A stretch of DNA of 64,000 nt from sequence record OR805294.1. One strand, given 5' to 3'. Made by a program: the position numbers and the translations under genes. The notes below the pieces were generated by a model, which worked only from the letters and a program-made list of their open reading frames with translations, made no database searches and was not told where the DNA came from. Shown here piece by piece: positions 726 to 44,770 of this stretch (its first letter is position 1; each line of letters starts with the position of its first letter).

Positions 726-1161
726 CCTTAACGAACTTGCTTATATAAAATATATAAGATTCTATGTCTTCTTTAAATGTGTTCATAAGCATCATGTATC
801 GGAAATACTTCTGTTAAGTAATCTAGCAGGTACGACTATAGGAGCATATAGATTTGAACGTCTCGGAAGCATGGATTATTGCACTATATCGATTGACATG
901 CCACTCGACGAGGATTATTTTATTGCCTGTAATACAAAAGGAATTATTTCTGTAGCAAAATGTAATCTCATATCAATGAATTTTTATGATTTTGGTACAC
1001 AATTATCAAACTATTACTTTTTTAAATACGACAATACATCGAATGGTTCGTTTTTTGTGTATCCATCCAAAAATTATTTAGTACATCCAGAAGTAATATC
1101 TTATATAAAGAAATATAATAATGAGAGTTTATATAAAAGAACAACGTATTTGCCGGGGTAA
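685..1161 (+). CDS. hypothetical protein (true start probably downstream)
   Basis: 158-aa ORF whose N-terminus lies in the GA/TC-poor island. Confidence 0.5.
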   Translation: MLMLKKLYNAIYAFLNELAYIKYIRFYVFFKCVHKHHVSEILLLSNLAGTTIGAYRFERLGSMDYCTISIDMPLDEDYFIACNTKGIISVAKCNLISMNFYDFGTQLSNYYFFKYDNTSNGSFFVYPSKNYLVHPEVISYIKKYNNESLYKRTTYLPG

Positions 1162-1360
1162 TGCCGAAATATACGATATAGTTATCAGACAGGAAGGTTA
1201 TTTAGAATTTCTAGAAGAAACAGAAACAGAATACACAGGATTTCTAAATGTTGTTAAAATATACAAATGCACCGATGGGTATCAAAAACGAATTCATACA
1301 ACAAAACAGAAGTTTTCTTTTCCGAAAGATTCTGACGAAATACTTATAATAGAATTATAG
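1121..1360 (+). CDS. hypothetical protein
   Basis: ORF coupled to its neighbours. Confidence 0.55.
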   Translation: MRVYIKEQRICRGNAEIYDIVIRQEGYLEFLEETETEYTGFLNVVKIYKCTDGYQKRIHTTKQKFSFPKDSDEILIIEL

Positions 1361-1370
1361 GAATTTCTGC

Positions 1371-1937
1371 ATGACTACAACTGAGGCAACTCTACTTAGT
1401 CTCGCTATCGCTGCAAGTTGTATGGTAGCAGACAAAATGTATTCTAAAGAATTTGAATACATTACTAACCTTAAAATAAAAGAAGAAAAACTAAAAGAAG
1501 AATTTGCTATAAATGATGAAGATAAAATAAAATCATACATAGCATTGTGTAAAAGAAGAAAGAATTGCAGGGCAGTAGCAGAAGCAATATATTATGAAGC
1601 GCGTAGTGAATCTAGGATAGGAATGCAAGGTGTAGCATTTACGATATTAAATAGAGCCATGAATCCTACTAGATGGCCCAACACCCCGTACAGTGTGGTT
1701 TACTATAAATGCCAATTTAGTTATACTTGCGACGGCAGTAGAAAACAAGGTTTTAAAGAAAAAGATAAATGGGATTTAGCTAATATAGTAGCATATAGGG
1801 CTATAAATAGACTATCTAGCGATCCCACCAACGGCGCTGATCATTATTATGCACCGCACAGAGTAAGCAAACCGTATTGGGCAAAGAAAATGAGAAAAAC
1901 TGCCAAATTAGGTAATCATGTGTTTTATAAATCGTAA
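1371..1937 (+). CDS. SleB-like cell wall hydrolase (Hydrolase_2)
   Basis: motifs AEAIYYEARSE, VAFTILNR, VVYYKCQFS, DPTNGADHYY, KLGNHVFY; hydrophobic N-terminus. Confidence 0.9.
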   Translation: MTTTEATLLSLAIAASCMVADKMYSKEFEYITNLKIKEEKLKEEFAINDEDKIKSYIALCKRRKNCRAVAEAIYYEARSESRIGMQGVAFTILNRAMNPTRWPNTPYSVVYYKCQFSYTCDGSRKQGFKEKDKWDLANIVAYRAINRLSSDPTNGADHYYAPHRVSKPYWAKKMRKTAKLGNHVFYKS

Positions 1938-1952
1938 TGAGGGGATTATACT

Positions 1953-2183
1953 ATGGTATGCAAAACAATAACAAAAGAAATGTTTGAAATGCAATATAAT
2001 ATAAGAAACTATTCTACCGTTGCTCATATATATATTAGCACAAGAGCAAATATAATAGAAATATATTATAAAACCCCGTTTAACCAGGGCATAGTATTGC
2101 AAAATTATTACGTTAACGAAGAATGCGACCAATATATACAGTCTTGTAGATTATATAGGGAATATGAAAAAAATAGAATATAA
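1953..2183 (+). CDS. hypothetical protein
   Basis: GAGG RBS upstream; coupled ORF. Confidence 0.55.
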   Translation: MVCKTITKEMFEMQYNIRNYSTVAHIYISTRANIIEIYYKTPFNQGIVLQNYYVNEECDQYIQSCRLYREYEKNRI

Positions 2184-2463
2184 AATAAATCTTTTAATCG
2201 AAGAAATAAAAGAGTTTAAAAGAACAAAAAAAGAACTCAATGAAGACCTAATGCAACATTATACAAAGTTCTATTCAGAACAAGTTAAAGATGTTTATTT
2301 TAGATCTTTAAATTTTAGACGAAATTCTGTAAAACAACTTATTAAACAATTGCATACAGTATGTAAACAAGCTAAAATAAAATTACTTTATATTAAAGCT
2401 AAGTCTTCAACTAAACAGCAGAGGCAAAAATGTAATAAAGTAAACGTAACTAGACGAACATAA
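2164..2463 (+). CDS. Lys-rich hypothetical protein
   Basis: coupled ORF. Confidence 0.5.
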   Translation: MKKIEYKINLLIEEIKEFKRTKKELNEDLMQHYTKFYSEQVKDVYFRSLNFRRNSVKQLIKQLHTVCKQAKIKLLYIKAKSSTKQQRQKCNKVNVTRRT

Positions 2464-2537
2464 TATTTTGCGCTATACTGTATATCAAGCTAAGAAGCTT
2501 AACAAACAACATTAATACAACCGAGAGGTAATTTGCA

Positions 2538-2897
2538 ATGGCAAAAAGCTACGAAGAAGCATGGGCACTGGCAGAATTTCCCGAGCACTCGAAGGTCGTC
2601 GATGGTCAAGTCGGCGGCGTGACCGAATACGTTCTCCAGGAAATCGACTCCTACTGCATCGTCGACAAGGACGGCAACAAGGTGTGGCTGAACATTCAGG
2701 GCAACATGCACCGCTTGCTCGGTCCGGCCACCCACATCAACGGGAAAAAGAAAAACGCCTGGGCAGTGGACGGTGACATCATCCGCACCTGGGATGAATA
2801 CGAAAAAGCCGTCGGCGACCGGGTGCCGAAAGAGCACATTATGATGCTCAAGCTTCAACACGGCGACGATCAGTTCGAGTTCGACACCGACGACTAA
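2538..2897 (+). CDS. GC-rich, host-codon-adapted hypothetical (likely early) protein
   Basis: abrupt GC rise confined to the ORF, C/G third positions, GAGGT RBS. Confidence 0.9.
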   Translation: MAKSYEEAWALAEFPEHSKVVDGQVGGVTEYVLQEIDSYCIVDKDGNKVWLNIQGNMHRLLGPATHINGKKKNAWAVDGDIIRTWDEYEKAVGDRVPKEHIMMLKLQHGDDQFEFDTDD

Positions 2898-2919
2898 ACC
2901 GGCGGCGAGTGCGCTCGGT

Positions 2920-2960
2920 TTATATAAAATAAGGGACTTTATGTCCCTTATTTTATATAA
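2920..2960. terminator. perfect 18-bp inverted repeat (terminator or processing hairpin)
   Basis: TTATATAAAATAAGGGAC-tttat-GTCCCTTATTTTATATAA. Confidence 0.75.
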
Positions 2961-3083
2961 GAAATAAACAATAAATGACATTTTTAGTTGAATGTTGCTT
3001 GCAATCATGTATTTTTGAATATAATAATTAATGTAAAATATTAGTCGTTTCTGTAATTATATTTTCATAATAGGATATATAGT

Positions 3084-3692
3084 GTGTTCAAAAATGAATG
3101 TTTATTAGTAGGTGTGACTGAAGTTATTGCGAATATATTTTTATTTTCTAAATGTGTTTCTGAATGCAAACCAGCTGGCACATATGTAAGTAATCAATCT
3201 ATAATCTTACGATGGTACTCAACTGGTATAGTAAGTGAAGTTATATATAATATCAAAATAGTGCCTTCTGTAAATAATAAATTATTTTTAAATACGATAA
3301 CATGGTCTGATGGTCATTATGCCTACCAAGACATTAAAAAACCGACCAAAGTATCAGATGTATTACATACTAATAAATATGAAACTTCGTTTGCTATCCA
3401 TTTTAAAAACATATCGTTTGATATGTTTATTCCTTTTATAGTAAAGGAAGTAAGAGAATGTCAATTTACAATACACGATCTACGGTACATAACAACGATT
3501 CCCATAGGATCGCGAAATACCAATTATAAAATAATATCGTATGTAAATGATACAGATTTATGTAATGTACATTTTAGTGCCAGGAATTACCTGTACTTTT
3601 CATTGACCACATATAATTATAATACTATATATAAACACACATTCAAAATATCAGAACAGTTTAGTATATGGGATATTGATGAAATATGTTAA
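3084..3692 (+). CDS. hypothetical protein
   Basis: 202-aa ORF, GTG start after AGGA. Confidence 0.65.
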   Translation: MFKNECLLVGVTEVIANIFLFSKCVSECKPAGTYVSNQSIILRWYSTGIVSEVIYNIKIVPSVNNKLFLNTITWSDGHYAYQDIKKPTKVSDVLHTNKYETSFAIHFKNISFDMFIPFIVKEVRECQFTIHDLRYITTIPIGSRNTNYKIISYVNDTDLCNVHFSARNYLYFSLTTYNYNTIYKHTFKISEQFSIWDIDEIC

Positions 3693-4294
3693 ATTTAAAA
3701 GAAATAAGAAAGTCTGAATACGGGAATATATTTGGAGTTAGCTATCTTATATATAACTGCAGACTTTCTAGTTTCGATGTAGTTCGAAATTCATGCATAA
3801 TATGTTTTGAGAGCAATTTTTATAATTGTATAATTCATTCGTGCGAATTGGATTTATTTTATTATAAATATGGATCTTTAAATGACGATCCAGAAAATAA
3901 TATCTATCCTACTGAAATTAAATTATTAAATTCAAACAAATTAAAGAAGAATAGAATTTTTTATTCTTATATATCTATAATATCCAAAGCAAATGAGTTA
4001 TACAAATATATTCCCTATATACTATCTAGGATTGCATCCAATTCTATCGTACTTCATAATTACAAAAACTTGAATATAGGTGATTACGGCGGTTTTATAC
4101 GTGTGTGGACATACTGGACTAATTCACACATACTCGGAGGACCTAATGTAAGTGTAAATAATTCGGCTATAACTGTTATATTTCCTAAGATCAATAAAAC
4201 AGAATACAGCATGCCTGTAATAGAATCCTATAATTTGGTATTAGAAATAGATAAAAACTCTAATATAATTTTTCCGGTATTAATAAATGAATGA
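3686..4294 (+). CDS. hypothetical protein
   Basis: 202-aa coupled ORF. Confidence 0.65.
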   Translation: MLNLKEIRKSEYGNIFGVSYLIYNCRLSSFDVVRNSCIICFESNFYNCIIHSCELDLFYYKYGSLNDDPENNIYPTEIKLLNSNKLKKNRIFYSYISIISKANELYKYIPYILSRIASNSIVLHNYKNLNIGDYGGFIRVWTYWTNSHILGGPNVSVNNSAITVIFPKINKTEYSMPVIESYNLVLEIDKNSNIIFPVLINE

Positions 4295-4766
4295 AACCAT
4301 ACAATCTCTCCGAAGAGAAATAGAATTATTAAAAGATCAAGGTCTAAAATTAAGACATATAAAAAATCCTTGTAAAAAATGTATGGGCTACGGAATTATT
4401 TGTTATGGATCTACTGCTATGTGGAACAGAGGTGCAGTCGGAGGGAATGCAATAACACCCGGCCGGTGCGATGCTTGCTGGGGTTCTGGTGATGAAGATA
4501 ACCCGTGGGAAAATTTATTAGAATTAACAATTCAAAAAAGAACAATAGATACAATCTACAACTCTCTTAAATTGGATGGTTGGATAGAAGTAACGTCCGA
4601 TACTGTATTTTTTAAAGGAAGTAACAGAGTTGTTACTAAATCTGGAAATATTTTATATGGATATAGAAGTTATTATAATGACAAACAATTAATCTGCTAC
4701 ATCGAAGAACCTAATACTTCAATTAATTTAAAAATAACTAGTTGTGTTTTTATACAAAAGTGTTAA
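4287..4766 (+). CDS. protein with DnaJ-type CxxCxGxG zinc-finger pair
   Basis: CKKCMGYG and CDACWGSG. Confidence 0.7.
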   Translation: MNETIQSLRREIELLKDQGLKLRHIKNPCKKCMGYGIICYGSTAMWNRGAVGGNAITPGRCDACWGSGDEDNPWENLLELTIQKRTIDTIYNSLKLDGWIEVTSDTVFFKGSNRVVTKSGNILYGYRSYYNDKQLICYIEEPNTSINLKITSCVFIQKC

Positions 4767-4788
4767 AATGTAATATATTTAAAAACTT

Positions 4789-5178
4789 TTGAGATTACCA
4801 ATGTATAATTTCGAAAAGTTTATAACCGAGTATCTGTATAATAAAAAAGAGACAGAGCATTACGGGTATTTTTCTATATATAATTCTATTATTTTAAAGT
4901 GTATTTCTGGATGTTCAGATGAGCACTACGAATTTATTTCTAATTCTTTTATATCATATAAATGTAAAAAGAAATTAATAATAGAATTTTCTGTTAAATC
5001 GAAAGATAACATATACCATTCCATTAAACTTGCAGCAAAATATCACTCTAAAACAAAAGAAAAGTTAGACACTATTACTAATGTGGATAATTTATTTTTG
5101 TTTGAAACAAAAATAGGAATTATAGGTAATAATTTGTCTGTATATGTAGATTTAGGCGAAGTAGAATATATTGTATGA
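4789..5178 (+). CDS. hypothetical protein
   Basis: ORF in operon; start probably ATG 4801. Confidence 0.6.
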   Translation: MRLPMYNFEKFITEYLYNKKETEHYGYFSIYNSIILKCISGCSDEHYEFISNSFISYKCKKKLIIEFSVKSKDNIYHSIKLAAKYHSKTKEKLDTITNVDNLFLFETKIGIIGNNLSVYVDLGEVEYIV

Positions 5179-5801
5179 TATACAGTTCGCATGCAAACAT
5201 ATTTAGGTCTGTTGCAAATTCTCTTATTTTAGAAATTTATAAAATAAACATCTCTTTAGAAAAAATGATAGACGATGGACACGGCGACATATTAGATAGA
5301 CAAGTAGTTTGCAGGAAAGGAACTTGGTTTTCTAAAAATTATTATATAATTTCTTCTTCTGCAAAAGAATTAGTTTCTCTTTCACCTGCATTTGTAGAAA
5401 TATCAAACATTACTGTATCTGCATATACTTCTGGCGCATTAAAAAATAACCCTTTATCTAAAATGAAGGGATTCGACAAATATATGCATAATGTAGGTGA
5501 TGCGCTAACTGCAATTAATTCGTCTAAGCTTGCAAACAAACTATTTAAATCTATAGAAGAACAAAATATAATTGTTGCTAAAGGCAGGGAAGAATATGCT
5601 TTATCGCAAAGTTTAATAAAAGAAAATTGTCATACAAACAAAGGAATACAATATAAACAATTAGAAGAAATAATTAATACCTATATACGTCAATTGCCAG
5701 AACACTTACAACACGAAGCAAGAAACAGAATAAGAAAATCCGATAAGAAACTTAAATCTTTAATTAGTTACGCACAAGAACATAACATAACTTTTATATA
5801 G
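5175..5801 (+). CDS. hypothetical protein
   Basis: 208-aa ORF, ATGA coupling. Confidence 0.7.
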   Translation: MIYSSHANIFRSVANSLILEIYKINISLEKMIDDGHGDILDRQVVCRKGTWFSKNYYIISSSAKELVSLSPAFVEISNITVSAYTSGALKNNPLSKMKGFDKYMHNVGDALTAINSSKLANKLFKSIEEQNIIVAKGREEYALSQSLIKENCHTNKGIQYKQLEEIINTYIRQLPEHLQHEARNRIRKSDKKLKSLISYAQEHNITFI

Positions 5802-7875: not shown

Positions 7876-8610
7876 TTTTGAAATTTTAGTCATTATAGTA
7901 TTATATAAATCATATGCACGTTTGATTATGCGTTTGTATGCTCTGGGGTTTTCGTTTTTAAGAAACATAATATAATTTATGTGTGCATTTTCTATAAATG
8001 CATTTATAAATTCTTCTTTTGTTAAGACAGTTCCTTTTTTGTATAAAAAACTAAATTGATCTACAGTTTGTTCTAAAGCTTGACTTATTCTTGCATTTAT
8101 TTCGTATGATTGTCTATAATATGTATCTGAAGATGCCGGATCGTATCTTTTTATTTTTTCATTCTTAAACGGTTGTCCTTTATTTTTATCTAGTGCATGC
8201 CTTAACTCATGTACTATAGTTGAAACTACACTCTTGTTATTACTAAAAGAATTACCATAATAATGAGTATAAACATATATAGTATTAGATACTAAGTTGT
8301 ATTCTCCTTTCTTTGCACCGTGTTGTCCGGAAATGTCAAACACTACCTGTATATCTTTAAATTCATTGTATAGATCATCGAATATATCATCAGGAATTAT
8401 ATTTTTTAAAACAACAGTATAGGTACTTAACATTAATTGTACAGTCGGCCAATCGTAGTTTTTCAACAACAATTGATCTTCTATTTCTTCTCTGTGTTGC
8501 TTTAAATTGTTGAAATATGATATAGCGTTTGCTACACACATTTTTGCAATATTTTGAATAATCAGTTCTTCGTCTGAAGTTTCGATTAAATTAATTTCGT
8601 TTAGTCGCAC
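7858..8610 (-). CDS. HExxH zinc-metalloprotease-like protein, putative capsid-internal
   Basis: STIVHELRHALD ... YEINAR; N-terminus MRLNEINLIE. Confidence 0.75.
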   Translation of the reverse strand: MRLNEINLIETSDEELIIQNIAKMCVANAISYFNNLKQHREEIEDQLLLKNYDWPTVQLMLSTYTVVLKNIIPDDIFDDLYNEFKDIQVVFDISGQHGAKKGEYNLVSNTIYVYTHYYGNSFSNNKSVVSTIVHELRHALDKNKGQPFKNEKIKRYDPASSDTYYRQSYEINARISQALEQTVDQFSFLYKKGTVLTKEEFINAFIENAHINYIMFLKNENPRAYKRIIKRAYDLYNTIMTKISKNKTGA

Positions 8611-14524: not shown

Positions 14525-14746
14525 CATATAAAAGTATGCGTATAATTTGCACATATAACGCAATAGCACAGCAACAAACAAAACGTAATAAAAAAATGTT
14601 GCAATAGCTTAAAAGTTTTAGTATAATAAGCACATAACAACGCAATACAGTTTACAAACAAAACGTAATAAAAAATGTTGCAATAGCTTAAAAGTTTTAG
14701 TATAATAAGCGTATAATGCAGCTTATATAACAAGTTAAAAACCCCT
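14525..14746. other. GA/TC-free island (222 nt) covering the tRNA-operon promoters
   Basis: no GA or TC by hand scan. Confidence 0.85.
14574..14710 (+). promoter_or_regulatory. tandemly duplicated sigma70 promoter (57-58 bp direct repeat) for the tRNA operon
   Basis: copies 14574-14631 and 14654-14710, each A-rich UP + TTGCAA-17-TATAAT. Confidence 0.85.
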
Positions 14747-14819
14747 CGGTAGCTCAGTTGGTTAGAGCGCGCGACTCATAATCGCTAGGTCACTGGTTCG
14801 AATCCAGTTCGAGGGACCA
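14743..14819 (+). tRNA. tRNA-CAU (Ile2/lysidine-type or elongator Met), copy 1
   Basis: full cloverleaf, anticodon arm CGCGA-CTCATAA-TCGCT, CCA end. Confidence 0.9.
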
Positions 14820-14841
14820 ATTTTAAGATGTTGTGCTTTTA

Positions 14842-14926
14842 GCCCGAGTGGTGAAATTGGTAGACACAGGAGACTTAAAATCTCCCGCTTCGCAGCGTAC
14901 CGGTTCGAGTCCGGTCTCGGGTACCA
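14842..14926 (+). tRNA. tRNA-Leu(UAA), copy 1
   Basis: cloverleaf with long variable arm, CCA. Confidence 0.95.
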
Positions 14927-14976
14927 AACAAAAGATATAAATACTTAACAAGATAGGAAACTATTCTAAAATTAAA

Positions 14977-15052
14977 TGGCTAGTAGCTCAGTTGGTAGAG
15001 CAAGTGACTGTTAATCATTGGGTCGTAGGTTCGAGTCCTACCTAGCCAGCCA
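14977..15052 (+). tRNA. tRNA-Asn(GUU)
   Basis: cloverleaf, U1-A72, G73, CCA. Confidence 0.95.
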
Positions 15053-15078
15053 ATTACACTTTGTTGTATATTCAATAT

Positions 15079-15154
<76 letters not shown>

Positions 15155-15223
15155 ATTTTAAATAACATTTGTATCTAAAGAGATACAATAGTCTAAATAA
15201 AATATTCATATAATGTTTCAAAC

Positions 15224-15300
15224 GGGACTTTAGCTCAGTTGGTTAGAGCGCGCGACTCATAATCGCTAGGTCACTGGTTCGAATCCAGTAAGTCCCACCA
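15224..15300 (+). tRNA. tRNA-CAU (Ile2/lysidine-type or elongator Met), copy 2
   Basis: same D, anticodon and T arms as copy 1; acceptor GGGACTT/AAGTCCC; CCA. Confidence 0.9.
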
Positions 15301-15350
15301 ATTTTTATATACAAATCAAACTATACTTAAACTATATAATGAATGAATAT

Positions 15351-15435
15351 GCCCGGTTGGTGAAATCGGTAGACACAGGAGACTTAAAATCTCCCGACGA
15401 AAGTCGTGCCAGTTCGAGTCTGGCACCGGGCACCA
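15351..15435 (+). tRNA. tRNA-Leu(UAA), copy 2
   Basis: cloverleaf with long variable arm, CCA. Confidence 0.95.
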
Positions 15436-15444
15436 AACTCCTAC

Positions 15445-15476
15445 AAAAGGAACATATTATAGTATGTTCCTTTTTT
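15445..15476 (+). terminator. terminator of the first tRNA operon
   Basis: AAAAGGAACATA/TATGTTCCTTTT plus T-run. Confidence 0.8.
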
Positions 15477-15661
15477 ATTATGATATTTTTATTATGAATG
15501 AAATAATGCATATATCTGCCAACACATACGTAATAGAATATCGCGTATTAAACAAGTTAGTAGTCACTATAAAAAATAATAGATCTTTTACATTATGGGT
15601 ACATTTTGATATCGGTACATTTTCTATGGCATGGAAATACAATGCAATATAGAATTAAAAA

Positions 15662-15823
15662 ATGAAATACATTATTAATTTACAATACTCAACAGAAGTA
15701 ATATATATGCCGTGTTTCAACATAATATCGTTATGCGATAATAGATCTGTTACTATCCTTTCTATTACTATGATATTTAAGATAAGATACTATTTGCATC
15801 CGATGTTCCGTTATATTCTATAA
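15662..15823 (+). pseudogene. truncated or single-unit member of the paralog family
   Basis: MKYIINLQYSTEVI start motif, stops after 53 aa. Confidence 0.45.
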
Positions 15824-16297
15824 TACATAATATTTTTATTGTAACAAATACCAGAAGTGCTTAGATAATATATAGCAATTCTGTTTATTATCGATATTGC
15901 GGTATACTTAGTATTTCTTATTAACCGTATTACATAGAATAAAGAATGGAAAAAATTTTAACTATTTCACATAAAACATTAATATGTGAACTGTCGTTAT
16001 TAAACTGGTCGAAATCCATAGTTTGTGCATATTCTGGCGAAATAATATGGTATGTTCGGTTGCATAAGAAATGTTATGTAGTACAGCTAAGATGATAATG
16101 AACTGTATTTTTTCCTATTCGTACTATTTAGAACGCATCGTATGTCATGCAAAAATCTACAAAGGGTTTGTAGTCAGTAAAAATACTTTTTGTGAGAAAT
16201 CCGTAATAGCTTTATACTTAATAAATAGTGGTAGTTATTTTCATAAATGTTATGTCGATCATTACTTAATTGTATAGATATATTTTAATAAAAATAG

Positions 16298-16326
16298 TTG
16301 ACCGAACAAACAAAACAGTATATAAT
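16298..16326 (+). promoter_or_regulatory. sigma70 promoter for tRNA-Arg
   Basis: TTGACC-17-TATAAT. Confidence 0.75.
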
Positions 16327-16377
16327 GTTACGCATATAAAGCATTATTACAAAGCTATCATTAGTTGCACAAGATAT

Positions 16378-16454
16378 GCGCTCGTAGCTCAGCTGGATAG
16401 AGCATCCGCCTTCTAAGCGGATGGTCGGGGGTTCGAATCCCTCCGGGCGCGCCA
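16378..16454 (+). tRNA. tRNA-Arg(UCU)
   Basis: cloverleaf, CCA. Confidence 0.95.
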
Positions 16455-16722
16455 ATTTTAAAGAGTGTTGTGTTATGCAAACAATAAGATTTGACATAAG
16501 ACTTCTTCGTTATAGTATGAAACAAGGTTTCTGTTGCATAGGTAAAGATATATTTGAAGTGTGCAGAAAAACTCGGATCAGTCCAGGTCAGCTAAACTTA
16601 CGAAAAAATTATATAGGACGAGTATTAATCGGAATTGATTCGAACTACAATCTGCACAATACCTGTTTAGTAGGCTGGACTCGCTATAAAAATATTATAG
16701 TATAAAAATTTATATTAATAAT

Positions 16723-16965
16723 ATGAATAGATGCAAAGAACATCTACAATACAGAACAATCAAAAAGCATACATTAACTTGTAGGAAATGCAAAGAGTTA
16801 TCGTTACAAATAAAATTATTTTGGCTTCAACAACAAGCATTCAGTATTAGAACCGATACTAGCGGAATATACATATTCGATATTAAATATAATTCTATTT
16901 ACGTATACTCTGTAGCTTGGTATAATACAGAATTATACGGTAAAGGGAAAATAATTTTAGAATAA
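16723..16965 (+). CDS. hypothetical protein
   Basis: ORF; CxxC. Confidence 0.5.
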   Translation: MNRCKEHLQYRTIKKHTLTCRKCKELSLQIKLFWLQQQAFSIRTDTSGIYIFDIKYNSIYVYSVAWYNTELYGKGKIILE

Positions 16966-16993
16966 ACATGTATATATAAGAGTACCTCAAATA

Positions 16994-17326
16994 ATGAATA
17001 ATTATTCTAATGATACAGATATTCTAAAATGGATAAAGCGTAACAATAGAAAAAATGCACGTCTAATTTCATATATAGACGGAATATATAATATTGTTTA
17101 TTTCGATGGCGGAAAAGCAAGAGTTGGCATAGTAAAAGACAATATGCACTGCAGATACGGAATACATAGTCGTGGATCTATGTATTCGAAAGATATAATG
17201 AGCCTGTGGCAATCTAGTACAGGTTCGTGTTCGCCCGATGATGTAAAGATTATGCAAGATTATCTAGACGATAAATGCATACTTCCGGAATTTGATTTTT
17301 CTCAGATTAAAAATTTAAAATGGTAA
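16994..17326 (+). CDS. hypothetical protein within the tRNA region
   Basis: 110-aa ORF with balanced composition. Confidence 0.7.
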   Translation: MNNYSNDTDILKWIKRNNRKNARLISYIDGIYNIVYFDGGKARVGIVKDNMHCRYGIHSRGSMYSKDIMSLWQSSTGSCSPDDVKIMQDYLDDKCILPEFDFSQIKNLKW

Positions 17327-17349
17327 ATAATATAACAATATAGTTTTAT

Positions 17350-17426
17350 CGCAGGGTATGCAAGAGGTCTAAGCAGAAAGGCTCATAACCTTTTTATCGT
17401 GGGTTCGAATCCCACCCCTGCAACCA
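17350..17426 (+). tRNA. initiator-type tRNA-fMet(CAU), atypical
   Basis: C1:A72 mismatch, CAT anticodon, CCA; only two G-C pairs next to the anticodon loop. Confidence 0.8.
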
Positions 17427-17435
17427 GTTTTATAT

Positions 17436-17512
17436 CTAGGCATAGCTCAAGTAGGTAGAGCACTTGCTTTGGGAGCAAGAGGTTGGGGATTCGAGGTCTC
17501 CTGCCTAGACCA
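17436..17512 (+). tRNA. tRNA-Pro(UGG)
   Basis: C1-G72, A73, CCA. Confidence 0.9.
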
Positions 17513-17521
17513 ATTTACTAT

Positions 17522-17594
17522 GCAGTCCTAGCTCAATTGGTAGAGCACTGTCCTTCCAAGTCAGATGTTACGGGTTCGAGTCCCGTGGGCTGCT
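17522..17594 (+). tRNA. tRNA-Gly(UCC) lacking an encoded CCA
   Basis: cloverleaf, U73, followed by CAA; U30:U40 mismatch. Confidence 0.8.
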
Positions 17595-18323
17595 CAATAT
17601 TCTAATATAATCGATGATTCGTGTAGTGGATAAATATGGAAGTATAGTTATACCATCTAATATAACGGTGCTGGAAATACAGGCATACACAACAGAGTTA
17701 GTGTATGTAAGAAAATCTCATTGTTTATGTTTATACATTCCTAATATAGGAAATTATGCTTTATGGTTTTTAGACAGATAGGATAAAAATATAAATCGAT
17801 ATTGTTCTGTTTAAGGAACCAACATTAAATGGCAGGTTGCATATTTAGACTCGATTTGTCTATTTTTCGTGAAAATGTATATAGTATTTCTAGGTTGTCT
17901 TATACAAAATCTATATGTGTTTCAATAAAAACTAAACCGACAAGCAATAGAAGACAATTAGAAATATATGTTGTAGATAAAACAACTGATTTTTTAGTTG
18001 CATGCAAATATTTTTAGCTTATCTATTTTGACTTGCCTTTAAAATAAATAACCATTATATATTTGATATAACAACTATTCTAAATAGAAATAAAACCATA
18101 AATACACATAATAACGGTGTGGATTTATGGAAAACATATTTAGGATATCTATTAATGCTAACGAAGGTATTATACGAATATCCCCTACTTACTTTTTTAA
18201 TGGTGTTTTTTATTCAAAGCATTTGAATATTTTTATAATAGATCCCGACGGATATCTAATAAGAAAAATATATACTTGTAGTACATTCTTATGATGATTT
18301 CTTTTAAATATACAAAATAGCAT

Positions 18324-18352
18324 TTGACACAAGTATAATTATTTCGTATAAT
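18324..18352 (+). promoter_or_regulatory. consensus sigma70 promoter
   Basis: TTGACA-17-TATAAT. Confidence 0.85.
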
Positions 18353-18383
18353 AAGTGTATAAAATAACAAAAGAGAATTTTAA

Positions 18384-18743
18384 ATGATTTCCAAAATTCA
18401 AATTGTATACGGAATATATCTTCCTACTGCTGATGCAAAAATTATATACGAAGACTCGGAATACGAATCTAATAAAATAAATAAAAATATTAGATTATTT
18501 GCAAATGATGCATATTTAGAAGATAAGATTTTAGAAAATAAGGAATTCGAAGATAATCCCTATGTTCCGCACTTTTATGGTATTTTTTGTAAAGAATTCG
18601 ATAATGACCAAAGTGCATACTTATATAATGTTCCCAAATCTTTTATAGATGAATATAATAATGTAGCTCCAGCTATTTTGGCTAGACTCGGTTATTTAGA
18701 TAGAGTTGCAGGAAAACAACATTGTAGAATAATCTACGAATAG
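18384..18743 (+). CDS. hypothetical protein
   Basis: ORF directly after consensus promoter. Confidence 0.75.
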   Translation: MISKIQIVYGIYLPTADAKIIYEDSEYESNKINKNIRLFANDAYLEDKILENKEFEDNPYVPHFYGIFCKEFDNDQSAYLYNVPKSFIDEYNNVAPAILARLGYLDRVAGKQHCRIIYE

Positions 18744-18757
18744 AATTAACTAGTTTT

Positions 18758-18847
18758 GGAGAGGTGATAGAGTCTGGTTTATTATACTAGTCTTGAAAAC
18801 TAGCGGATCGAAAGGTCCCGTGGGTTCGAATCCCACCCTCTCCGCCA
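18758..18847 (+). tRNA. tRNA-Ser(UGA)
   Basis: long variable arm, G73, CCA. Confidence 0.9.
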
Positions 18848-18852
18848 AATAT

Positions 18853-18942
18853 AGATACTTGACCGAGTGGCTTAAGGTGCTTCCCTGCTAAGGAAGTGAG
18901 TTTGAAAAAGCTCCGTAGGTTCGAATCCTACAGTATCTGCCA
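18853..18942 (+). tRNA. tRNA-Ser(GCU)
   Basis: long variable arm, G73, CCA; terminator at 18949-18976 follows. Confidence 0.9.
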
Positions 18943-37511: not shown

Positions 37512-39932
37512 CAAATATATTAGAATTAATGTATGTATGTCACCATACATATAATATAACAACTGACAGCTACTATAACATTTTCTTCTTAAATAAAAAT
37601 AATAAAATTATCTTTGTTGTGTATTAAAACAAATGGGAATATTTCTCTTATCACGCAATACTTGCTATATTTGTGTTATACATGTCAGACGCATTGTATA
37701 CAAGATTAAAATGTATGACAGACATGGCAATTATGTGTTTACAATTAATGTTATCTAAGAACATATTAAATTATATAGAATTTGGTTGTATGTAATACAG
37801 TTTAATAATGGCAACAGATATTGATAAAATAACATACATTTCATTTAACTCATGCTATATATCAGTTAATCGTTTTAGTGTTATTATATATTATGAGTAC
37901 GGTAGATTGATTTTATATGATGATACCCCCGGGCTTATATAAGAACGTATTCTACATACAGTATAATGTACGTCATATCAGCATATATTATTTTGATGCA
38001 TGTGAATGTAATATATTACAAGTAGAATGCAATAATTTTCTTACTCTAACATATAAATTAAATGAAAAAACCAATAAGTAATATAGTTGAATTATCGCTT
38101 AATACGCACCGGTTTAATACCAATTATATAACTAGTGCTCATTGTTTAGTATTTTATAATGCGTCGTCATATCCTATACATTATGTTCGTTTACACACAA
38201 ACAAACGTTAACACTTATGTCGCCGGTATCAATTCATAATATAGTTTGTATTCAACACTATCTTAATAGATGGTATACTAGAATATCCCCAACAGGTATT
38301 AATGTGTATTCAGATTCATATGTTAGAATTAGAATAAATGTTCATAAATAAAAATATTATAAATCACGATATACATTATGATATGTTGCAGGTATCTTCA
38401 TGCGCACATACAATAGATTCATCGCTATGTAGTACATATCTATTGGCATGCATTTATAATAGTAATGAAAAAATTATTATAATTAGTGTTGCATATCTAA
38501 GATGAATGGTATAAAAGATATAATAGAATTTTCATCGCATGCATACGAAATATGTGCAAATACAGCAAGACTTAGAGATATAGTATACTACTCGATACTC
38601 ATAAAGGCAAAAGACGGTCTTGCATTTTATATGGTAGACTCGTTTGCATATATAACATGACCAGTATCCTTGAATGTTCTTACAATACTTCTAATATTAT
38701 GTTTCGTTTTTGTAAAAACAGTGATATTTTAGTTGTGAACTTTCTAAACAAAAATGATGACATACATTTCATTGTAATAATTAGATACAAATATACATAT
38801 CGTTAATTACTAATACATAGGAGAGTAATAAATGAATAGAGCAGCAAAGAAAAATGTTTCTATATTTGTTATTCAGAATCATACTTTTAGAGTTCATGTT
38901 GTACGATATGATCCTGCGAGAATTTCAATATATCTCTCACTTGTACATAATTGTGTTGCATCTTAAGAACTATATCTGTATAATGTAGGTTACATTTGCA
39001 TGTATAGGATTATCTTTCATATAATATATGCTTATTAACTATACGACATGTATTGAATTACTTTATAGTATTGTATGATTCGTAAAAATATAGTTCTAAT
39101 ATCACATAACACGTCAAAAATAATATTAGAAAGAAGAACAAGCAAAGTATTACGTGTTTCTATATTTAAATCAATCGGAAAATACTACTACCATTATTAT
39201 ACAACGTGTGGGAAACTATAATGCAAGATCATCATTTCACTACACTGTTGTATATGTCTAATCGTGCAGATAAAATAAAGATTTTTCGACAGCCTTCCTG
39301 TCTTATTGTATATATTAAGTCAGGTATGTTATATATTAATAAACAATTCTTAAAATGTTAGAATATATAGATACTCTCAAATATAATTACATTTTAACTG
39401 TATGCAGCGGTGTAGAGTCTATATCATTTGAATCATTTACTAGATCAGTGATATCAGTTTCCATAATATATAATAATATTACTATCTTTCCGTACCAAAC
39501 TACACGAACTATACTGTATGGTGTATAATCTTATTTTTATTTCTTGTAATGTTTCTTTAATTAGTTTTTCTATTTTTAATAAAACATTTGAAGTTTATAT
39601 TTATGGAAAAATGTTATTGGTAATTTATTATACAGGACTGCATATATGTTAGATATATTGCTACGGTTCCAACGCAGAGTGGATACAATTAAGGTGGAGT
39701 TAATATGGCGTCACTTGCATTTTTATGAAAAAGCCGGCGAGGAGTTAGAGTTATTTCATATTATATTTCTGCCGCCCGATCACCGAAGTATTAATTAACA
39801 AAAACAAGTTGTATTTTTCGGCATAAAAATTTATGAATAAAGATACAAACAAAGAATCACCTATTATTAAAGAATTATATTTTATATTAAGATTGTAAGT
39901 AAAATAAAATACTTTTAGAATCTAAAACTAAA

Positions 39933-40082
39933 ATGATCGATTGGGTATTTAAATTGTCTGCTAGTTGCTACGAAATAGACGGACAATATAGTGAGACAAT
40001 AAAAATATATAATTCATATTGTCTGTTAGGAACTATACAATATTATAATACTCAATTGAAAATAAATTTATATAAATTTTAA
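39933..40082 (+). CDS. 49-aa single-unit or truncated family member
   Basis: MIDWVFKLSASCYEI. Confidence 0.45.
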   Translation: MIDWVFKLSASCYEIDGQYSETIKIYNSYCLLGTIQYYNTQLKINLYKF

Positions 40083-40408
40083 TATTGTAGTGAGAATTCT
40101 TTTAAATAGGCATACTATATGAATGATCTATTACAATACCAACTCACATTATGTTCCATATCATTGCAGAAAGCTCGTTTTAAGTCAGGCAATGTGTATT
40201 ACATTCTAATTGAACGTAACGACAGCGGTAGGTATTCCCGAGATATAAAAATACTTAAATGATATGCGTATATTTGTAATATCACAAAATTGCATGACTA
40301 TCAGACTTTTTTATCATACATATTTCATTAAAGATGTAAATTATGATTCAATTTGTGTATTATATAAAACGAATAGCAGAATTGTAATACATCCGAGTTT
40401 TACAGTAG

Positions 40409-40597
40409 ATGAATATATTCGATCTGTCTTATAATTCTTCATTTATTTTGATGAAATCGAATAGAATATACATTAGTAATAATATCTATCGTGTAGGAGC
40501 TACATATGTATTACCTGCAATAACGAAATATATACATCAAATATTCTATGTAAACGCTGCAATATATAGATTTTTAGATACAGGTATACTAGTATGA
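40409..40597 (+). CDS. 62-aa single-unit family member
   Basis: MNIFDLSYNSSFI. Confidence 0.5.
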   Translation: MNIFDLSYNSSFILMKSNRIYISNNIYRVGATYVLPAITKYIHQIFYVNAAIYRFLDTGILV

Positions 40598-40782
40598 AAT
40601 TCAATATATTTAAATTGCAAAGAAGATGTCACATTATAAATTGTCATTTTTATGACATTCTTAGATTTTCAAAACCTACATATTTTCGAGATGCTGATAG
40701 AATAACTATATTTTCATTAATAGGTACTAATAGTATCGGAATTTACGCGGATATGTATAAAGGATATGCACAAACCATATGA
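40594..40782 (+). CDS. 62-aa single-unit family member
   Basis: MKFNIFKLQRRCHII; ATGA coupling. Confidence 0.55.
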   Translation: MKFNIFKLQRRCHIINCHFYDILRFSKPTYFRDADRITIFSLIGTNSIGIYADMYKGYAQTI

Positions 40783-41090
40783 TTGAAATATTAATATTTT
40801 CGAGTGTTAGTGATTATATTAATATAAGCCACGATATGGCACGGCTATATAATCTTAATGGTGTTAGTGAATTAATATTTGCATCAAAACCATACAAGTA
40901 TATTATATTAACTAATTTAAAAAATCGTATAGGTATATTCTGTATTTCAAATATAATAAGTGAAAGGGTGATGGGAGATATTACTAGTAATGAATGTTGG
41001 GCTTATCCTTGGCCTCCAGATACTGGCATAGATGTATATATTGATTTCCTGTATAAAAATGATGAGCTTTCTACTAAACACACAATATAA
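40779..41090 (+). CDS. paralog-array family member
   Basis: MIEILIFSSVSDYI / IGIFCISNII. Confidence 0.6.
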   Translation: MIEILIFSSVSDYINISHDMARLYNLNGVSELIFASKPYKYIILTNLKNRIGIFCISNIISERVMGDITSNECWAYPWPPDTGIDVYIDFLYKNDELSTKHTI

Positions 41091-41139
41091 CCATAGACAA
41101 ATAAGTGCATTATGCTAATATATACATGCTTACTAAACA

Positions 41140-41530
41140 GTTACTTGTTAAGTAAGTTAAAAAGTCTGTAACAGTGATGTTACAGGATACACAGGCAAAT
41201 ACGGTTGGAAGATGCTGTGTAAAGAACAAATATCCAGCTCATTCCTAGGCATTATAGCCTACACATTATATTTGAATGGGCATAAAAACTTCCAAAGAAC
41301 CTTCGAAATTTTCTCATAGGATAGTGTATTAGAAGGAATGCACTATCAGGAAGCTGTAGGTGATGGTTGCTATCCCAGACAGTCCTTTCTAAAATACTTT
41401 AATATGATATAAAGTTCTATGCAACCGTATACATGCTGTAAGATATTAGATTACACCATGTATTAAACGTAAAAGCAAAACCTTCAGTTAGTAATCTCGC
41501 AGTGAAGGGGGTAGGTGAGTGCTACCCAAA
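41140..41530 (+). ncRNA. candidate large structured ncRNA or leader A (~390 nt)
   Basis: ORF-free, at least 10 helices, 9-bp loop-distal pairing 41199-41207/41422-41430; possible promoter TAGACA(41094)-16-TAATAT. Confidence 0.65.
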
Positions 41531-41570
41531 CTCAACAAACAACTAATGGTCTAGAAAAGGTATAGTATAC

Positions 41571-41978
41571 ATGCAACATACTCACATTCGTTTCTACAAC
41601 GAAGAAACTCAACAGATCGATAACCGCCGTGGCGCTACTGTTGCCTGGGAAACCGCCGGCAACAAGATCCGTATTTCCGTAGCAGCATGTTCGGAAATGG
41701 ATAACTTCAACCGCAAGACCGGACGTGAACATGCTGCTAGCCGTCTCGAAAGCGGCGACTACATCGAGTTTAACGGCACCGAACTTCTTAATGCACAGAT
41801 GTCTTCTGTAAGTCATGTGCAGTCTGAAGGTCTCGTTCGTGCTATGTGCTTCTTGCTAGCACAAGGCAAAGGCGATCTATATTACCCGGCAAGCGAAGGT
41901 CAGCTTCGCAGCGAAGCCGAGTGCAATAGCTACAACGCCCTCGAGTACCTGAAACACCAGATGGGCATTCATCAGTAA
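41571..41978 (+). CDS. GC-rich, host-codon-adapted hypothetical protein
   Basis: GC rise confined to the ORF; RRGATVAW ... CSEMDNFNRKTGR. Confidence 0.85.
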   Translation: MQHTHIRFYNEETQQIDNRRGATVAWETAGNKIRISVAACSEMDNFNRKTGREHAASRLESGDYIEFNGTELLNAQMSSVSHVQSEGLVRAMCFLLAQGKGDLYYPASEGQLRSEAECNSYNALEYLKHQMGIHQ

Positions 41979-41991
41979 GTATTCGGCCATT

Positions 41992-42034
41992 CGGAATTGC
42001 GATTTAGGTTTTGGAATTCTAAATCGCAATTCCG
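41992..42034. terminator. perfect 16-bp inverted repeat
   Basis: CGGAATTGCGATTTAG-11nt-CTAAATCGCAATTCCG. Confidence 0.65.
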
Positions 42035-42254
42035 GTTTCCAAATTCAATTTTAGGCACAAACTCGGATCCGCATTTGCATTTTGCATTTACATTTTGTGT
42101 TCTGAGTGTATATGCAAAATGCAATCGCGCATGTTGTCGATGCATTGGCTAATCTTTTATTTTTGATAGTTTAGAAAAGATTAAGAACAGAAACTATCTG
42201 TAAATTAATAAAAATAACATTTACATTACATACACATATGCATATACTATATAC

Positions 42255-42532
42255 AAGTTATGCGCTGTTGCATACGTAAATACCTCCTATGTTGTTTAGA
42301 TATGTCGATTCTGGTATAACCAGATAGACCTAAGGATGATGCTAGTGATTCCTTAGTATTGTATATTCTAGCTGAGTATAAAGAGTAAGGGGCTTTATAC
42401 AAATAACAATTCCTTAGGCAAGATATACCGCTCCGTTGTGCTGACGAGCATAATTTGCCCAGATACAGAGCACGTGACTGGTCTGAGGAGCATTTATATC
42501 AGAAAGGCAGACTTATGTTTGCCTTTCTTTTT
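42255..42532 (+). ncRNA. candidate ncRNA B (~280 nt)
   Basis: TTTACA(42220)-17-TATACT promoter, nested helices, intrinsic terminator 42501-42532, no ORF. Confidence 0.7.
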
Positions 42533-42550
42533 GAGCAGATATTCTCTTAT

Positions 42551-42629
42551 TCACTTCCTTATTCATTTCTTTATTCATCTCTATTTCGTTTGTCACTTCC
42601 TTATTCATTTCTTTATTCATCTCTATTTC
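42551..42629. repeat. pyrimidine-rich 37-bp direct repeat x2
   Basis: TCACTTCCTTATTCATTTCTTTATTCATCTCTATTTC at 42551 and 42593. Confidence 0.85.
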
Positions 42630-42639
42630 ATTTGTTATT

Positions 42640-42757
42640 GCAAATAAGACTAATTCTTATTTGCGTTTGTAATTTCATTTGTTATTGCAAATAAGACTAA
42701 TTCGTATTTGCATTTGCAACGAAAAAGAATATGCAAATAATAACTAATCTTATTTGC
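42640..42757. promoter_or_regulatory. cluster of three 25-bp palindromic boxes (Fur-box-like)
   Basis: GCAAATAAGACTAATTCTTATTTGC at 42640, variants at 42687 and 42733. Confidence 0.75.
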
Positions 42758-42931
42758 ATTTGCACTGCCTAGTATATGGATTGGTAGCATACTTGGAAAT
42801 GGATAGTAAATAAGTAGTTGATTTGTTTATAAATTATACTTCTACACCATACAGATTGACCTTGCTATATATAGCTCGTGCGCGCGTATACAAGATGGTA
42901 AAAAATAATTTAAAAATATTTTAAAAAATGC

Positions 42932-43055
42932 TTGACTTTCCATTACTACGACCTTAAAGTGCGAACTGTAGACGCAGTGTGTAGAGCGCTACATAGTAAG
43001 CAACGCAGAAAGTAAACAAAAAATGCTTGACGCAATGCAAACTAGGCTCTACACT
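42932..43055 (+). promoter_or_regulatory. tandem strong sigma70 promoters
   Basis: A/T UP element + TTGACT-17-TAAAGT and TTGACG-17-TACACT. Confidence 0.8.
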
Positions 43056-43138
43056 GTATACAAGCTTAAGGGGTAGGTGCCCCGAAAGTGTAGTAAGTAA
43101 ACAACATAATCCTTCCATCAGCTACAGAGGTATACAAC

Positions 43139-43843
43139 ATGTCCGTACATATCACTCGTCAACGTACCGACAAACAGCACGTCCTGGCACTGGCAATCAA
43201 CGGTGTGGTCATCGGCCAGACTATGGCTACCTACACCACCCCGAGCAAGCGCACCTGGTCGGCGACCGCCGAAGTCGAACTGGCAGACGGCACCGTCGTA
43301 CAGTTCGAGCAGAAAGAAGTGTTCAGCGCGATCCGCATCACCCGCGAAATCGAGCAGGCGCTCGACGGCAAGGAACTGGCGGCCAAGTACACCCCGGAAC
43401 CGAAAGTTCCCGGGCAGAAGGGTCCGAAACCGCTCACCGACGAAAGCCGGCTCAGCAACGCGATCGCGATCGTCAAAGCGGCCATCACCCACACCGGCTT
43501 CGACGAAGCTACCCTGGTGTTCGACGGGGTCGACAAGGCCAACTTCGAGCAGAACAGCACCTCCGTCGGCAACAAGCTGCGTCGCCTGGGCTTCGTCTTC
43601 GAACTCGGCGCCGGCAAGGCGAACAGCGGCAAGGGCTTCCTGATCAACCGCAAAGCGCAGGCCGAGGCAGAAGCTGCCGAACGCAAGGCCAAGCGCGACG
43701 CCGAGAAGAAGGAACGCGAAGAAAAAGCGGCGGCTGCCAAGCGCGAAGCTGACGAACGCAAGGCCAAGCGCGAAGCCGAACGCGCCGAAAAGGTCGCTGA
43801 AAAGAACGCAGCGATCGCCGGGGCAGCGCAGGAAAGCAAGTAA
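43139..43843 (+). CDS. GC-rich early protein with K/A/E/R coiled-coil tail; paralog of 61964..62422
   Basis: AGAGGT RBS; all 11 Ile codons are ATC; shared NGVVxGQ...xFSAIRI domain; terminator at 43859-43886. Confidence 0.9.
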   Translation: MSVHITRQRTDKQHVLALAINGVVIGQTMATYTTPSKRTWSATAEVELADGTVVQFEQKEVFSAIRITREIEQALDGKELAAKYTPEPKVPGQKGPKPLTDESRLSNAIAIVKAAITHTGFDEATLVFDGVDKANFEQNSTSVGNKLRRLGFVFELGAGKANSGKGFLINRKAQAEAEAAERKAKRDAEKKEREEKAAAAKREADERKAKREAERAEKVAEKNAAIAGAAQESK

Positions 43844-44770
43844 TTGCCCAACTGCGCCAGAAGGGGAGCAATAGCTCCCCTTTCTTCATGACCACACAAT
43901 CTATATACTACTATGTCTTTAACTATATTTTCTATATCAGCTAATTTGTATACAATAACTTGGTATTCTGCGCAACTGACACAATGGTGTTATATAGACA
44001 TAATAACACGCGACGCTAATATTTTTATAACCTATCCATTTTATAATAACATATTTGTATCTAAAATTAGTTCTAATACAATAATTGAAGAAAAAATTGA
44101 AGAAAAATATGAACACTATATTAGAGATATGTCGTGGAATAAGAAATGACTATATAACAGTCAATAATTTTACATATGACTACTATCTAGAGGTAAACAC
44201 ACCTGCGTTTTCTTTAATGATAATTATTCCGACAGTTCCTATATTAGACAATACTTGCATTACTTTTATAAAAAAGTATTAATATGAATATATTCTTTAT
44301 ATCAAACGGTCTATCTAATATAATATATCATAGAGAGTATGATACACATATGATAGATATTGAGATTAATAATTCTACTGTTATTTGGCTTACATATTCT
44401 TTCAGTGTTGCTAAGGTATCATTTAGATATATTACCTGATTCGTTTTCTTATTGTATGAGTTGCAATTGCAAATTACTCTTATTTGTAATTACATATAAA
44501 CAATCAGTTGCTATTAAAAGTATTTGCTGTTAATATACTATATAACAGTGCAATTGATATTTTAAAATACAGTGTGCAATACATCTTACATGTATTAAAA
44601 TTTGTGTGTTACTTGTTTTGCATTAATGATTAATATACCTCTCTTACAGTACAAAACTCATACTATATACAATTTGTTCGGGCGATCGTTCTCGAAAAGT
44701 ATACAAGTGAGAGATAGCAATCTAATTATACTTGTTAGTTTCTATATAGAAGGTTCTAAATATAGAAAAT

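Follow-up and report, generated by a model that had tools for sequence, protein, structure and literature searches.

Bacterial and phage messenger RNAs (mRNAs) can be stabilised by long structured 5' leaders, as with the 5' untranslated region of E. coli ompA and the leader of phage T4 gene 32. A comparable arrangement may exist upstream of gp35 in Pseudomonas phage Ettore (OR805294.1), a jumbo phage (288 kb) in the genus Wroclawvirus, of which PA5oct is the type member; the window referred to throughout is the 64,000-nucleotide (nt) stretch of this record that we analysed, with each window position equal to the record position minus 124000. An earlier note, made from the letters of the window, had flagged positions 41140-41530 as a candidate pseudoknotted non-coding RNA (ncRNA) or giant leader. 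We consider it probable, with moderate confidence, that 41151-41570 constitutes a long 5' untranslated leader, belonging to a monocistronic and extremely abundant plus-strand gp35 mRNA. Like the ompA and gene 32 leaders, it would combine stem-loops near the 5' end, a very abundant message and, past the structured part, an open ribosome-binding region. Unlike them, it has no sequence or Rfam relationship to these leaders and, for its 5'-terminal hairpin, only a predicted position, whilst at ~420 nt it is three times as long as the ompA leader.

A further comparison is provided by ncRNA001, described as a 'putative lncRNA' of PA5oct (8263-8498; PMC7318152), whose homologue occupies window positions 42275-42535 on the plus strand. 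The leader and ncRNA001 share species, strand and a 1.4-kb conserved, GC-enriched and very highly transcribed block, their RNA depths are of the same order (765,000-911,000 for ncRNA001), and a sigma-70-like promoter candidate precedes both. In contrast to the leader, ncRNA001 is a separate locus ~700 nt downstream, past gp35 and the putative terminator, with no sequence similarity to the leader and no convincing open reading frame (ORF) following it; it is also even more conserved, with 1-2 variable columns per 100 among relatives, no other part of the 7.4-kb locus being as conserved. The phage-associated RNAs GOLLD, ROOL and HEARO resemble the leader in their several-hundred-nt size class, phage setting and many helices, but the leader matches no Rfam model and continues into a translated gene. 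YrlA or Y RNA-like modules (RF02553) were found only in the gaps of distant relatives (L011 and L014), the leader itself giving no match.

Transcription of the leader and gp35

The flagged stretch falls within a 480-nt ORF-poor gap (41091-41570), which is preceded by a 103-amino-acid (aa) ORF (40779-41090), the last in a long array of small AT-rich ORFs, and followed by a 135-codon ORF that corresponds to PA5oct gp35. Locus identity is 98-100% in ten other records, and these near relatives (0-2% diverged) form the basis of all comparisons of variation given here. In PA5oct, the counterpart region lies within the 39-kb terminal repeat and is early-transcribed, with high early transcription described 'between gp34 and gp105' (PMC7318152). 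The elements of the proposed expression unit are:

41094-41121, plus strand: sigma-70-like promoter candidate from a consensus scan (TAGACA, 16-nt spacer, TGcTAATAT as extended -10; 9/12 matches with TG)
41128-41157, plus strand: predicted hairpin of 7 + 5 bp (12 bp) at or near the transcript 5' end; RNA coverage begins in its 3' arm, at ~41151
41151-41570, plus strand: proposed untranslated gp35 mRNA leader from RNA depth, ~420 nt from the onset of coverage and ~445 nt from the predicted start
41528-41570, plus strand: C/A-rich initiation region, unstructured in the predicted fold, with a weak Shine-Dalgarno (SD) sequence, AAGG, at 41557-41560
41571-41978, plus strand: gene for a 135-aa protein (PA5oct gp35, EST35_0035; 49% GC), supported by substitution pattern and homologues
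41991-42035, plus strand: perfect 18-bp hairpin directly after the gp35 stop (-27.2 kcal/mol, z -4.8), coinciding with a collapse in RNA depth

RNA evidence was drawn from Logan contigs of four RNA-sequencing runs (X1, X2, X8 and X9) from three studies. All four runs carry G at 41316 and, because this allele is limited among the relatives to PA5oct and phage 30-2, they are consistent with PA5oct infections. Summed word depth in X1 and X2 was about 900-5,700 over 39500-41145, increased ~300-fold at about 41147-41151 (bin averages) and reached 825,000 and 898,000 in bin 41156-41339. Depth was 750,000-900,000 over the leader and remained nearly flat from 41156, at 675,000-850,000 up to 41891, after which it fell to about 280,000-335,000 in the stop-codon bin and to only 1,200-1,400 in contigs from 41995-42015 onward. 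In run X1, the Illumina read-2 adapter was joined immediately 5' of 41151. The same adapter orientation was seen 5' of 42299/42310, within plus-strand ncRNA001, and 5' of 42980, upstream of a plus-strand gene for a 234-aa protein, with the complementary read-1 adapter located after 41724.

No depth step or contig break was detected at 41530-41570 in the contig data, and no terminator-like site was found on the plus strand of 41151-41570. Across a 5.5-kb stretch, the low-coverage runs yielded 41163-41784 (X8), 41199-41655 (X9) and 42313-42511 (ncRNA001, X9) as their sole contigs, the first two spanning the leader/ORF boundary at 41571. Since no others were recovered from these runs, the gp35 leader mRNA and ncRNA001 are the most abundant transcripts of this stretch. 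The 'giant leader' alternative of the earlier note is supported by this very high transcription, contiguous with a downstream protein-coding gene, and by a leader that lacks a convincing ORF of its own, whilst a discrete RNA with its own ends is not indicated by the contigs, from which alone it can be judged that transcription runs on into the gene. The promoter candidate, both hexamers of which are invariant in 10/10 relatives, lies 25-30 nt before the jump in RNA depth and predicts a start at ~41126-41130. The hairpin at 41991-42035 is likely a terminator or a 3' stabiliser of the transcript. A second long hairpin (42070-42129; stem ~20 bp, z -3.2) lies between gp35 and ncRNA001.

Coding status of gp35

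Substitutions among the ten relatives indicate that gp35 is a real protein-coding gene under strong purifying selection, with 13 of the 15 distinct changes synonymous, at third positions, and 2 non-synonymous. Full-length homologues obtained through exhaustive HMMER searches (39-41% identity in the alignment, 43% over matched stretches) begin with the same N-terminus, MQHTHIRF, and the motif CS..D.F.RK.GR is common to a wider family of short phage proteins. The AlphaFold2 model of gp35 is confident (pLDDT 90.8) and had no match among solved and predicted folds, and sequence searches of Pfam, PHROG and PDB also returned no match.

In place of gp35, a minus-strand ORF of 94 codons (41532-41816) is annotated in the records of Ettore, Paride, Deifobo and Cassandra. 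This ORF was rejected, with 8/10 changes non-synonymous. It is the first in a run of small annotated minus-strand ORFs (41532-43118) in the same four records, and the remaining ones, over ncRNA001 and the repeats beyond it, look like gene-caller noise. The strand annotated at gp35 is wrong in several GenBank records, that of Ettore among them, and a correction is offered here.

Variation and predicted structure of the leader

The leader contains 18 variable columns out of 420 (4.3 per 100), less than half the variability of gp35 third codon positions (13 of 136; 9.6 per 100), the array of AT-rich ORFs upstream having about 9.6 per 100 (mean over bins). Because leader variability is lower than that of both the third positions and the ORF array, purifying selection on part of the leader is suggested. 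The last 70 nt before the gp35 ATG hold no variable column at all.

Every helix listed in the earlier note is present in the sequence, about where it had been placed, and most recur in the centroid fold. The predicted pairings are:

41165-41173/41178-41186, plus strand: centroid helix containing CTGTAAC/GTTACAG, forming the hairpin 41165-41186 (9 bp, 4-nt loop)
41199-41207/41422-41430, plus strand: long-range complement ATACGGTTG/CAACCGTAT, the 'pseudoknot' of the earlier note; closing helix in the minimum free energy (MFE) fold
41237-41244/41274-41281 enclosing 41246-41250/41257-41261, plus strand: hairpin GCTCATTC/GAATGGGC enclosing TAGGC/GCCTA; centroid fold
41320-41330/41337-41347, plus strand: hairpin of 11 bp with a 6-nt loop (GATAGTG/CACTATC); -13.2 kcal/mol, z -3.3
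41348-41390, plus strand: predicted stem-loop; centroid fold
41396-41401/41410-41415, plus strand: predicted stem-loop ACTTTA/TAAAGT; centroid fold
41430-41441/41451-41462, plus strand: hairpin of 11-12 bp (TACATG..TGTAA/TTACA..CATGTA) with a 9-nt loop; -10 kcal/mol, z -4.5
41481-41486/41503-41508, plus strand: hairpin CCTTCA/TGAAGG; centroid fold
41509-41514/41522-41527, plus strand: hairpin GGGTAG/CTACCC, adjacent to the preceding one; centroid fold

Compared with dinucleotide shuffles, the gap is somewhat over-structured (MFE z -3.05 on the plus strand and -3.39 on the minus strand), with 16 perfect stems that span no more than 80 nt and are 6 bp or longer, against 6.2 +/- 2.5 in shuffles, and the first two hairpins taken together (41126-41190) fold at -20 kcal/mol (z -3.8). 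The leader is laid out as about ten local hairpins followed by a 40-nt open C/A-rich stretch: the fold of 41520-41600 reaches only -4.4 kcal/mol (z +1.1), and 174/200 shuffles fold better. The gene start (ATG at 41571) and its weak ribosome-binding site, AAGG, 10 nt upstream, are as the earlier note described, and in distant homologues, too, the SD sequence is preceded by a C/A-rich stretch.

Six of the eight transitions at MFE-paired sites stay paired as G.U on the plus strand. In the 5'-terminal hairpin (41128-41157), C41138T in Paride leaves a U.G pair on the plus strand, and in hairpin 41481-41508, A41486G in Cassandra allows G.U pairing on that strand only. T41167G in Callisto breaks one pair of hairpin 41165-41186. 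The substitutions at 41253, 41266 and 41271 all fall in loops of the 41237-41281 hairpin, T41408C falls in the loop of the 41396-41415 stem-loop, and hairpin 41320-41347 is invariant. In PAC2 the loop of hairpin 41430-41462 is rewritten, with six changes inside the loop (41442-41450) and one more at the closing pair. Variable sites had a lower predicted pairing probability (0.37 versus 0.54, P = 0.03), and the support that substitutions lend to the predicted structure is weak.

Distant metagenomic relatives

Homologues of gp35 were present in three metagenomic lineages (L011/L012/L013, which represent one phage, L014 and L015). Synteny in these relatives consists of small ORFs, an 875-935-nt ORF-free gap and then the gp35 homologue, followed in the L011 lineage by ~1 kb in which no gene is called and then by a protein of 244-255 aa; the contig of L014 stops short of the region 3' of its homologue. 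Judged from this arrangement, a long non-coding run-up is a conserved habit of gp35. The hairpin region after the gene is homologous in the distant relatives (nhmmer E 1e-7 and 1e-5), as is the promoter region of the 234-aa gene, and ncRNA001 weakly so (L011 2727-2886; nhmmer E 0.007).

The leader itself had DNA homologues in the phage collection only in 11 near-identical Wroclawvirus records. A metagenome scan added one near-identical contig without new leader variants and two remote matches, and scans of IMG/VR with gp35 gave no match. Similarity of the leader to other DNA was found in none of the phage collection, the window or the metagenomic relatives, nor were leader paralogues detected within the window. 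As far as these searches indicate, the 420 nt of the window are specific to the Wroclawvirus clade. The relatives' leaders could be aligned among themselves only over the last 165-270 nt, a stretch that starts at an AT-rich promoter-like element, and RNAalifold applied to their proximal parts (3 sequences) returned no convincing conserved structure, with an unfavourable covariation term. Further 5', in or beside the gap upstream of the gp35 homologue, several sub-threshold YrlA-like modules per locus were detected in L011 (737-838 and 1270-1373) and L014 (769-836 and 1137-1240); they score 22-46 bits, below the gathering score of 69, and T-arms like those of tRNAs can be made out in them by eye.

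Proposed mechanism

Under the long-leader reading, the mechanism that we infer is one in which transcription would start at or shortly after the promoter candidate at 41094-41121, run through gp35 and end at the 18-bp hairpin. The 5'-proximal hairpins and the 3' hairpin, if formed in vivo, would shield the RNA from host RNases, contributing to its very high steady-state level, and the open C/A-rich platform would permit ribosome loading despite the weak SD sequence.

Several points weigh against this reading. The RNA evidence consists of contigs rather than reads, with direction taken from adapter orientation, ends placed to +/-25 nt, and primary and processed 5' ends indistinguishable. Coverage sets in ~20 nt past the promoter-predicted start, inside the first predicted hairpin; the corresponding offset from predicted start to first adapter-fused position is 13-55 nt at ncRNA001 and the 234-aa gene, and may be a library effect or processing. 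The lower variability of the leader could in part stem from the recombination history of the locus or from mutation bias, third positions being GC-rich in a genome that is AT-rich. None of the 124 MFE pairs shows a change on both sides, in relatives that are at most 2% diverged, and four substitutions break predicted pairs. The bias of variable sites towards loops is marginal, with P = 0.17 when the six clustered PAC2 loop changes are counted as one event. Among 420-nt windows of the 64-kb window, the GC-adjusted MFE residual of the leader has z = -0.38 (GC regression), and as many 6-bp stems occur in 29% of genome windows and as many 7-bp stems in 17%. Hairpins are present but no denser than in the rest of the genome and, given a stem excess typical of the genome and a long-range complement at chance level, sequence features alone are therefore no evidence of a special RNA. 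Leader and metagenomic relatives showed no similarity with nhmmer, and the AT-rich promoter-like element of the relatives, which resembles window 41116-41137, lies only ~125 nt before the ATG. Because of this missing distant homology and the position of that element, most of the leader may be lineage-specific and dispensable.

Alternative explanations

The alternative that fares best is that the leader is a functionless, co-transcribed and lineage-specific spacer separating a strong promoter from gp35, made up for example of decayed genes or RNA modules, with hairpins that reflect the AT-rich genome background. The ordinary fold energy and stem counts, the lack of covariation, the lack of homology with distant leaders whose promoter-like element sits so close to the ATG, and the other content of the relatives' gaps (YrlA-like modules) all speak in its favour. 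It does not readily accommodate a leader whose variability is below half that of the third positions of gp35 and of the AT-rich ORFs that flank it, no gene or tRNA remnant was detectable, and 300-400 nt of useless RNA would be costly in what is apparently one of the most abundant phage transcripts. We give this explanation a small though appreciable probability. Somewhat unlikelier still, in our estimation, is that the leader is a Wroclawvirus-specific functional RNA domain, acting either as a cis sensor or protein platform that sets how stable the most abundant early message of the phage is and how it is translated, or as a dual-function RNA that also titrates a host factor.

An ORF within the leader would make the transcript bicistronic, with the 35-aa 'gp34' or another mini-ORF preceding gp35:

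41212-41319, plus strand: 35-codon ORF ('gp34', EST35_0034), a coding sequence (CDS) in the PA5oct and PAC2 records

This is the largest plus-strand ORF of the leader, the others having 24 codons, and its annotation in two records, the abundance of the RNA and the location of 4/7 of its substitutions at third positions are consistent with a gene. The ratio of synonymous to non-synonymous substitutions is nevertheless 3:4, without a purifying pattern, compared with 13:2 and 42:6 in the neighbouring gp35 and 234-aa genes; the sole SD-like sequence, GGAAG, ends 1 nt before the ATG; no family match was found for the product; the ORF is left unannotated in 8/10 other records; and it would span only a quarter of the leader. 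A further leader ORF annotated in the PAC2 record exists only in PAC2, and six-frame translation of the leader, compared with the window and the relatives, revealed no protein remnant. The 41212-41319 ORF is probably not a gene, the leader is regarded, with residual doubt, as non-coding, and a bicistronic RNA appears to us quite improbable. Reads that the PA5oct paper assigned to the 35-aa 'gp34' most likely belong to the ~420-nt untranslated leader.

Rfam 15 (4227 models) was scanned at the gathering threshold (window), at E<=10 (40900-41700) and at E<=1 (window), and in line with the inability of the earlier note to assign an Rfam family, none of the three stringencies gave a family for the leader. 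The only gathering-threshold matches in the window were 12 tRNAs at 14.7-18.9 kb, the E<=1 scan placed nothing within 41091-41570, and the E<=10 scan produced only a 12-bit chance match to an R2 element. No YrlA (RF02553) or tRNA-like match was obtained in the leader even at E 10, the T-arm motif being absent, and ARAGORN detected no tRNA or tmRNA in 40000-44000. Motifs in the leader were not enriched for Hfq/Crc (1 A-rich CA motif versus 0.9 expected) or for RsmA (GGA, 5 versus 5.9 expected; ANGGA, 1 versus 2.1 expected), leaving a sponge of the CrcZ or RsmY/Z type unsupported by motif counts. Predicted duplexes of the leader with ncRNA001, ncRNA002 or the post-gene region were no better than with shuffles, by a method ill-suited to such long RNAs. 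The loop complement ATACGGTTG/CAACCGTAT exists as the earlier note said, but 35% of shuffles and 68% of genome windows contain a perfect complement of at least 9 nt, and G41427A in phage PAC2 turns one pair into C.A with no compensating change, so that the pseudoknot proposed from it is not supported.

A discrete and possibly pseudoknotted trans-acting ncRNA, serving as a host-protein decoy and either processed from the gp35 transcript or dual-function, would suit an abundance comparable to that of ncRNA001, the reduced variability, the many hairpins, the ncRNA-rich surroundings (ncRNA001 downstream and YrlA-like modules in the relatives' equivalent gaps) and the count of five ncRNAs in a 2018 preprint (10.1101/406421) against four in the 2020 paper (PMC7318152), but with flat depth and contigs across the leader/ORF boundary, no Rfam match, chance-level pairing broken in a relative, no motif enrichment and no significant duplex with ncRNA001 or ncRNA002, it is the least probable of the explanations considered.

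Neighbouring features

Downstream of gp35, ncRNA001 is flanked by a sigma-70-like promoter (42220-42248) and by an intrinsic-terminator-like hairpin with a T-run (~42502-42535). The adjoining region 42524-42762 has tandem repeats with units of 42 and 47 nt and contains the palindrome GCAAATAAGACTAATTCTTATTTGC three times, one copy scoring as a terminator. This region is the most variable among relatives, with 76 columns varying in a single bin of 142, and the PA5oct 'extensin-like protein' CDS that overlaps it looks doubtful. The promoter motif AAAAAATGCTTGAC occurs twice, at ~42925 and 43021, before the plus-strand 234-aa gene (43139-43843), which has 63% GC and a third-position GC content (GC3) of 0.77 in a phage of ~33% GC; a few very highly expressed genes are GC-rich in this phage. 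The product is listed as a structural protein by mass spectrometry in the PA5oct annotation, the 42 synonymous and 6 non-synonymous substitutions point to strong purifying selection, and the abundance of its RNA in run X2 was ~100 times that in X1. Elsewhere in the window, the tRNA cluster at 14743-18939 equals in number the 12 tRNAs reported for PA5oct.

Implications

For RNA biology, the finding is a modest one, a long leader and no new RNA class. Should the leader indeed make mRNA extremely stable in Pseudomonas, it would be of use as an expression part, and if it were a functional RNA domain, the domain and ncRNA001 would together make up a conserved module centred on RNA, to which a large share of phage transcription is devoted. 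PA5oct-type jumbo phages are candidates for phage therapy, and phage Paride, of the same group, kills dormant Pseudomonas. Most early genes of these phages are of unknown function, and the transcript of ~41150-42035 and ncRNA001 appear to dominate phage RNA, marking gp35 and these RNAs as targets for functional work.

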